A stretch of 64,000 nucleotides of DNA, taken from positions 166,029,402 through 166,093,401 of the forward strand of contig NC_068983.1 in the NCBI RefSeq assembly GCF_001194135.2, written 5' to 3'. A program made the translations under genes and the position numbers. The stretch's first letter is position 1. Each line of letters opens with the position of its first letter. Source of the stretch: Octopus bimaculoides. Taxonomy: Eukaryota. The notes beneath the pieces are model-generated. The model was not told where the DNA came from. It worked only from the letters and a program-made list of their open reading frames with translations, and made no database searches. Of this stretch, positions 50,394 to 51,298 are shown piece after piece.

Positions 50394-51298
50394 GTAGCAG
50401 GTGTTAAGGAAAACAAAAGGATAATTCATAAGAAAAAGGGTTTTAAAACCTTCTTTGAATAATATCTTAAAACAAAAATAAGAAAAAAATTGAATAAAAA
50501 TACAAACAACAAAAGCATTGTGATTGTTCTTCAATATTGTTTACATTTCTTGATGATATCATAAGGACTTGCTTGGAAAACAGTTCAGGGTTGGTGACAG
50601 AAGGAACATCCAGCTATAAAACTGTCTTAAAACATTAAGCCATGTTAGCATTCAAACACAGATGTGAAACAAACAAAGCACTCAGAAAATTATGAATTAA
50701 ATTTAATGCAATGTCATCTTTGCACAGCCACAGTTGGTCAAGTTAAGAACATGCTGGACAATAGACCTAAAGGCCAGCAGTTCAAATACCACCATTACTA
50801 TAGCTACTTGGAGTTCACATCAAAGACAATCTTCAATTTGCCAAACTGTAAAGAGACCCCATAGATTATTAATCCATCTGATTTGGCAACAGAAGCAGAG
50901 TAAAAATAACAAGCGTTCCATTATCTTACATTGACGTGTGTGCATTTATTTCTGTCGGTTGAGTTTAGAGGTTAGCTTTCTCCATGGTGTACTGCCCTTG
51001 TTTTACTACAGAAAGCTAAAGCGTTCAGTAATGCCAATATTATCCAATGAACTGTGATATCCTACACAAAACTTGAATGTAAATATAGCAGTGTGTCTTT
51101 GAATAAGTAATTTGTGTCAATCAGATATAATGTCATTGCTGTAAGAATCCCCGTCTTACTTTGGTGCTAATGGAAGTCACTGTTAAAACACAAAATGACA
51201 AAAATAGATTGATCTAAGTATGGGTATTGACAATCTGAAACATGATTAGAAACCTCACTGACTTTACCAAAAGGTAAACGAGAGTGAACAAAGGATAT
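50394..51298 (-). other. ARHGAP39: U12-type (minor spliceosome) AT-AC intron, 905 bp
   Basis: 5' site ATATCCTTTG, branch point TTTTCCTTAAC, 3' end ACCTGCTAC. Removal restores [12 protein letters not shown] in frame. Confidence 0.93.

Follow-up and report, generated by a model that had tools for sequence, protein, structure and literature searches.

The question raised by this locus is whether the minus strand between 51298 and 50394 holds an AT-AC intron of the minor, U12-dependent class within a Rho GTPase-activating protein gene, as the preliminary description had proposed, and whether orthologous genes are interrupted at the same place. The window, meaning the whole 64,000-nt stretch of Octopus bimaculoides DNA that was analysed, supplies all coordinates given here without a locus name; a slash within a sequence marks a splice junction.

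Signals of the intron and the gene around it

The bases quoted in the preliminary description were all found on the minus strand where it had placed them. The features of the intron are as follows.

51298 to 50394 (50394..51298), minus strand: predicted U12-type AT-AC intron, 905 nt, phase 1, 34% G+C
51290 to 51298, minus strand: 5' splice site ATATCCTTT, agreeing at every base with the U12 consensus /RTATCCTTT
50403 to 50410, minus strand: branch-point sequence TCCTTAAC, lying inside TTTTCCTTAACA (50414-50403)
50394 to 50395, minus strand: intron-terminal AC, read from the sequence

On the minus strand exon B ends in ...GAAGTCTTCAAGC (TTCAAGC) with its last base at 51299, and the first intron bases that follow are ATATCCTTTG. 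The 3' region of the intron reads TTTTCCTTAACACCTGCTAC and closes in CTAC, the final C being 50394, after which exon C opens at 50393 with TTATTCAAATG (TTATTCAAATGTACATGGGAGAC). Base 50404, 10 nt from the intron end, is the likely branch A, and the branch-site motif is separated from the 3' splice site by a mixed-base spacer of 9 nt (ACCTGCTAC) with no pyrimidine run. The TCCTTRAC branch site, the AT...AC termini, a branch-to-3' distance of the usual ∼10-26 nt and the lack of a pyrimidine tract were thus all observed together, and the earlier statement that the minor-intron signals are at consensus held for the 5' site and the branch site, both exact, and for the AC end. The intron is in phase 1, since it separates the first base of a Leu codon from the other two.

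Exons were mapped by tblastn with the protein of L081, a full-length orthologous mRNA whose 959-aa product has the Pfam domains WW, MyTH4, and RhoGAP; the junctions were then read and the ORF was assembled.

55501 to 55578, minus strand: exon A, 3' part (…QTHLNRHKKGIFGKRVSLANMLAWSK), donor AAG/GTAACA
55500 to 51372, minus strand: intron A-B, GT-AG because of that exon A donor
51299 to 51371, minus strand: exon B, 73 nt (DPIQKPMLRTNDKAVKREACEVFK, then C as the opening base of the Leu codon), acceptor ttgtcag/GAT
50246 to 50393, minus strand: exon C, 148 nt (opens with TT of the Leu codon and closes with GA), donor GA/GTAAGT
46123 to 45994, minus strand: exon D
44196 to 44083, minus strand: exon E
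43145 to 42988, minus strand: exon F
41899 to 41638, minus strand: exon G
40846 to 40652, minus strand: exon H, stop included

The end of exon C differs from the one first described and was corrected to 50246 (GA/GTAAGT). Exons D to H (40652..46123, minus strand) encode the remainder of MyTH4 and the RhoGAP domain, and the introns between them are all GT-AG. Joined together, exons A-H form one ORF of 385 aa, in which Pfam detected MyTH4 (E=9e-32) and RhoGAP (E=3.8e-32) and which aligns to L081 with 62% identity over 382 aa and 0 gaps; the AT-AC junction is therefore exact to the base. Splicing at the AT-AC sites joins C/TT into a Leu codon, and the spliced B+C peptide corresponds to an uninterrupted exon in more than 100 orthologues, so that excision regains both the conserved protein and the frame, as had been claimed. 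The assignment to ARHGAP39 was borne out by the MyTH4 and RhoGAP exons in the window and by the WW, MyTH4, and RhoGAP domains of L081. The placement inside MyTH4 was supported by alignment to myosin VIIa/VIIb structures, whereas the Pfam match lies ∼20 codons further downstream. The preliminary description had also called this the only one of 15 introns that is not GT-AG: the seven further introns mapped, in the C-terminal half, are all GT-AG, and no WW-domain exon was found in the 64-kb window by tblastn with the WW-bearing L081, so the count of 15 was verified in part. The 5' part of the gene is probably located beyond 64000 or in assembly gaps.

We then asked how far the signals exceed chance. 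Counted alone they do not: RTATCCTT was found six times in the 64-kb window vs. 5.3 expected, and TCCTTAAC three times vs. 2.5 expected, so the significance rests on placement, not on number. From the base composition, the joint chance of ATATCCTTT at the point where homology stops and TCCTTAAC at its resumption was estimated at ∼3e-10, requiring TCCTTAAC to stand 8-25 nt before an AC exactly where homology resumes. The signals were also scored with log-odds matrices trained on 84 human U12 introns (Olthof et al., 2019; PMC6717393, supplementary file 3). The 5' site scored 14.1, which is the median of the 84 training introns and is matched by just 2 of the 127,976 12-mers in the window; the branch site scored 15.3, against a maximum of 16.4 in the training set, and no other 12-mer reaches that value, making TTTTCCTTAACA the best in the whole window. 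In the same gene, the 5' sites of seven neighbouring introns scored -9 to -17 and the branch sites (five scored) 6.5 or less.

Other strong U12 5'-site-like 12-mers, scoring 10-15.6, occur on the plus strand at 57520 (GTTGTATCCTTT) and 1700 (CTTATATCCTTT) and on the minus strand at 35803 and 32360. Considered as further U12 introns of the window, such 12-mers were rejected for want of a convincing branch-site partner or recognisable exon context; they are probably chance matches. An Rfam scan of the 64-kb window matched no family, hence no minor-spliceosome snRNA gene within it.

Retention and alternative junctions

On retention of the intron, translation would run on through HILCSLSFTFW (…EVFK-HILCSLSFTFW*), that is 11 codons followed by TAA:

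51264 to 51266, minus strand: in-frame TAA within the intron, ending the ORF 51264..51584

The retention product ends upstream of the MyTH4 core and the RhoGAP domain; since the stop is met after 11 codons, a functional protein needs the splice. All GT/GC donors and AG acceptors near both exon ends that keep the frame open were enumerated as substitutes for the AT-AC junction. This gave 27 in-frame GT/GC-AG combinations, each of which loses LIQMYMGDR (at least nine conserved residues) or more, and the residues lost in all 27 include some that are invariant across orthologues. GT-AG junctions were accordingly dismissed as the main splice, with 27 of 27 failing to restore the conserved peptide.

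It is very improbable, in our judgement, that the exons are joined mainly via a cryptic major-class GT-AG junction while the AT-AC signals stand idle. In-frame pairs that could serve in this way are present, with donors at 51267 (TTG/GTAAAG) and 51315 (AGC/GTGTGA) and an acceptor ...GGGAGACAG/ at 50369, but the acceptor sits within coding sequence without a pyrimidine tract, and the full peptide that every such pair would shorten is kept in orthologues. Cryptic GT-AG sites may see low-level use if minor splicing fails. Donor 51267, 32 nt inside the intron, combined with acceptor 50369 would swap LIQMYMGDR for HILCSLSFTFW, and this could be a candidate cryptic product under such failure.

The same site in orthologues

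Orthologues were examined for the same junction. At six other loci a U12-type intron can be followed from end to end at the matching codon and in the matching phase; four of these introns are AT-AC and two GT-AG, and L090/L091 show one end.

L001: 5' end AAAC/ATATCCTTTA, 3' end TTTACCTTAACGTCACCAC/, 1586 nt, AT-AC
L087: 5' end AAAC/ATATCCTTTT, 3' end TTTCCCTTAACTGCAAGCAC/, 473 nt, AT-AC
L089: 5' end AAAC/ATATCCTTAT, 3' end GATTCCTTAACCTGTTCAC/, 768 nt, AT-AC
L092: 5' end AAAC/ATATCCTTTC, 3' end TTTTCCTTGACTGGCTCAC/, 2462 nt, AT-AC
L083: 5' end AAAC/GTATCCTTTG, 3' end TTTTCCTTGACTAGATTTATAG/, 357 nt, GT-AG
L088: 5' end AAAT/GTATCTTTTC, 3' end GTTTCCTTGACTTTAAGTAAAG/, 507 nt, GT-AG
L090/L091 (near-identical contigs): 3' end ACTTCCTTGACTGTAATAC/ with branch site and AC; 5' end off the contig

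In all the orthologous introns the branch A lies 9-12 nt from the intron end. The interiors compared (window, L001, and L083) have nothing in common beyond the splice signals, and the exons sampled are 58-70% identical at the DNA level, therefore coming from deeply separated lineages. No major-class intron was found at the site among the sampled loci. A U2-type intron that happens to carry AT-AC ends is an extremely improbable reading of the window: such introns exist, if rarely, but they are without the TATCCTT 5' motif and the 3'-proximal TCCTTRAC, both of which are exact here. The six orthologous introns moreover keep both U12 motifs, their interiors being otherwise unrelated in the ones compared, and the two species with GT-AG termini still retain the U12 motifs, which is known subtype switching within the U12 class.

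Transcript evidence was obtained from another species. L081 and L083 are from separate samples of one species (99.96-100% identity). The mRNA L081 reads ...TTCAAAC/TTACATTG, and between those very bases L083 holds the 357-nt GT-AG U12-type intron. This is direct evidence that the orthologous C/TT junction is used in that species. Downstream, L083 is otherwise continuous over 2233 nt that comprise coding sequence and 3' UTR; in this stretch six additional introns are present in the genome of a relative, L088 (compared were L083 1-2664, L081 1960-4267, and L088 8969-15996). Being unbroken at those six places, L083 looks like a partly processed transcript, a single contig, with selective retention of the minor intron. 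Minor introns are known for slow removal, and the retention in L083 fits this behaviour.

Most orthologues, on the other hand, differ from the window gene in having exons B and C fused. Two protein searches returned 126 short ORFs, which are genomic exons read through into introns. FKLIQMYM is contiguous in 111 of the 126, and eight that begin at M(Y)MGDRK are ambiguous, the intron being confirmed by DNA in two. A DNA-level scan of metagenome contigs found the fused exon in 78 of 80 loci; many Ga0056…/Ga0209… contigs presumably come from gutless-worm metagenomes. The fused exon is mostly 221 nt, which equals B + C, and the sampled ones share flanking introns with the window gene. In two GC-rich vertebrate-like loci, matching what we take to be mammalian ARHGAP39 sequence, one large exon covers window exons A-D with no intron at the site; L011 and L012 are assumed to be vertebrate. 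A fragment from the spider Trichonephila, named ARHGAP39, also has the exon fused and no intron. The comparison of orthologues that the preliminary description had left to be made therefore gives a mixed picture, with the intron in some and its absence in most, vertebrate-like loci and spider included. ARHGAP39 is absent from the minor-intron gene lists of human and mouse (Olthof et al., 2019; PMC6717393). Two near-identical fused-exon copies in sample ERZ25767047 (L002 and L003) differ slightly in DNA and lie beside different ORFs; the pair may represent haplotypes or young ARHGAP39 paralogues.

The single 221-nt exon at the site in most orthologues could also be taken to mean that an intact exon was recently broken by a transposon or an assembly error in the window and that the locus is a pseudogene, the more so as the draft assembly of the window contains N runs and is rich in repeats. 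We give this explanation next to no credence. The same site and phase are interrupted in six other loci by sequences that differ in length and content and all carry splice signals; the eight exons of the window gene are all open in frame, with 62% identity to the orthologue; and no target-site duplication is visible at the intron ends.

We concluded that 51298-50394 on the minus strand is very probably a phase 1 intron of the U12-dependent AT-AC type that interrupts an ARHGAP39/Vilse-type RhoGAP within the N-terminal portion of its MyTH4 domain. The class originally proposed is backed by the signals, the peptide restoration, the gap-free ORF, the orthologous U12 introns, and the transcript from another species. 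The analysis confirmed a real, old, and patchily retained U12 intron, a well-supported but ordinary case of a known class. As judged from protein divergence (58-82% identity), the intron appears to predate the split of at least five animal protein-sequence groups. Comparison of the loci indicates that its subtype has changed between AT-AC and GT-AG and that the majority of the lineages sampled have lost it by precise deletion. A one-residue insertion (G-P/A-D-L-RDEI) marks a protein group with both intron-bearing (L087, L092) and fused (L084, L009, P0004) members; loss has therefore also occurred within groups. A neighbour-joining (NJ) tree on 65 residues was too short to place the intron-bearing lineages or to count losses and was kept out of the inference.

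Predicted splicing route and relation to known minor introns

From the class of the intron, U11 snRNP would be expected to pair with the 5' site ATATCCTTT and U12 snRNP with TTCCTTAAC, leaving branch A 50404 bulged. The U4atac/U6atac.U5 tri-snRNP would come next and replace U11, and it would be the 10-nt spacing from the branch point, rather than a pyrimidine tract, that selects the 3' AC. Excision would then yield the C/TT Leu codon and the conserved peptide. These minor-spliceosome steps are described by Tarn and Steitz (1996) and Hall and Padgett (1994), in the form in which PMC10639083 cites them. We infer that the window ARHGAP39 depends on the minor spliceosome, which gives the prediction that ARHGAP39 of this animal needs that machinery; removal of the intron may also be rate-limiting, as the preliminary description suggests for the class.

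The intron resembles the human AT-AC U12 introns of SCN1A, SCN2A, TBC1D32, and DIAPH3, whose common 5' site is /ATATCCTTT and whose branch site is TTCCTTAAC (PMC6717393). The likeness extends to a branch site 9-12 nt from the 3' end, an AC terminus, the lack of a pyrimidine tract, a non-zero phase, and matrix scores inside the human range. It differs from the human U12 set in its host gene and position: a textbook AT-AC intron of the U12 class, it stands in a place that is listed for neither human nor mouse (PMC6717393). Two myosins that bear MyTH4 domains, MYO7A (AT-AC) and MYO10 (GT-AG), are minor-intron genes in human and mouse (PMC6717393). The family to which the window gene belongs, ARHGAP39 (Vilse/CrGAP; RhoGAP93B in Drosophila), has MyTH4 and RhoGAP exons, and the flanking intron positions are common to many orthologues. 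Our literature search found no paper tying ARHGAP39 or RhoGAP93B to U12 or minor introns, and IAOD or MIDB may already list the intron for some species.

Subtype switching and loss by deletion have been described for minor introns by Larue and Roy (2023; PMC10639083), who also describe molluscs and arachnids as relatively rich in them. At this site five loci are AT-AC and two are GT-AG with the U12 motifs kept, and the sampled site is either intron-less or U12-type, never U2-type, which fits deletion being commoner than conversion (PMC10639083). Patchy retention, AT-AC/GT-AG switching, and deletion rather than conversion are all documented behaviours of minor introns, and the locus leaves the general knowledge of them unchanged. 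Its value is that of a clean, small evolutionary case: a U12 intron of one subtype or the other stands at one site in seven or more independent sequences, conversion to the major class is not seen, and most lineages, vertebrate-like ones included, have lost the intron precisely. For annotation, a gene finder confined to GT-AG would truncate or mis-join the gene, so a correct model of the locus needs the AT-AC junction.

The long, scattered retention might reflect a dosage gate, in which slow removal of the intron acts on a neuronal RhoGAP and the activity of the minor spliceosome sets the amount of Vilse/ARHGAP39. The idea arises because the unspliced message meets an early stop, and a hint comes from L083, where splicing is complete at the six other intron sites expected and this intron alone is left; we regard it as a rather unlikely speculation.

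Eight N runs (3378-3387, 4006-4842, 27870-28058, 30882-31213, 32676-32964, 44333-45221, 47515-47554, and 62550-62559) mark the window as a gapped draft assembly, and the 889-nt gap at 44333-45221 falls in intron D-E directly upstream of exon E. ORF fragments at 47812-48048 (plus strand), 48461-48736 (plus strand), and ∼11032-12064 (minus strand) have reverse-transcriptase-like motifs (…LLYADDLALIAE… and …WYLDDTTLG…), and a LINE-like C-terminal region (…GRGRPRKTWDKVVKHDL…) is found among them; these are retrotransposon remnants, two of which lie antisense within an ARHGAP39 intron. A dispersed repeat with a translation containing ...TRLQSDLAEFLQLDALPNANHSESVVGAFTCH... is present in at least eight copies, at 263, 4935, 6314, 6844, 19505, and 49079 on the minus strand and at 18397 and 26315 on the plus strand. 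It is probably a mobile element, SINE-like or of another kind, and one copy is located within ARHGAP39 intron C-D.
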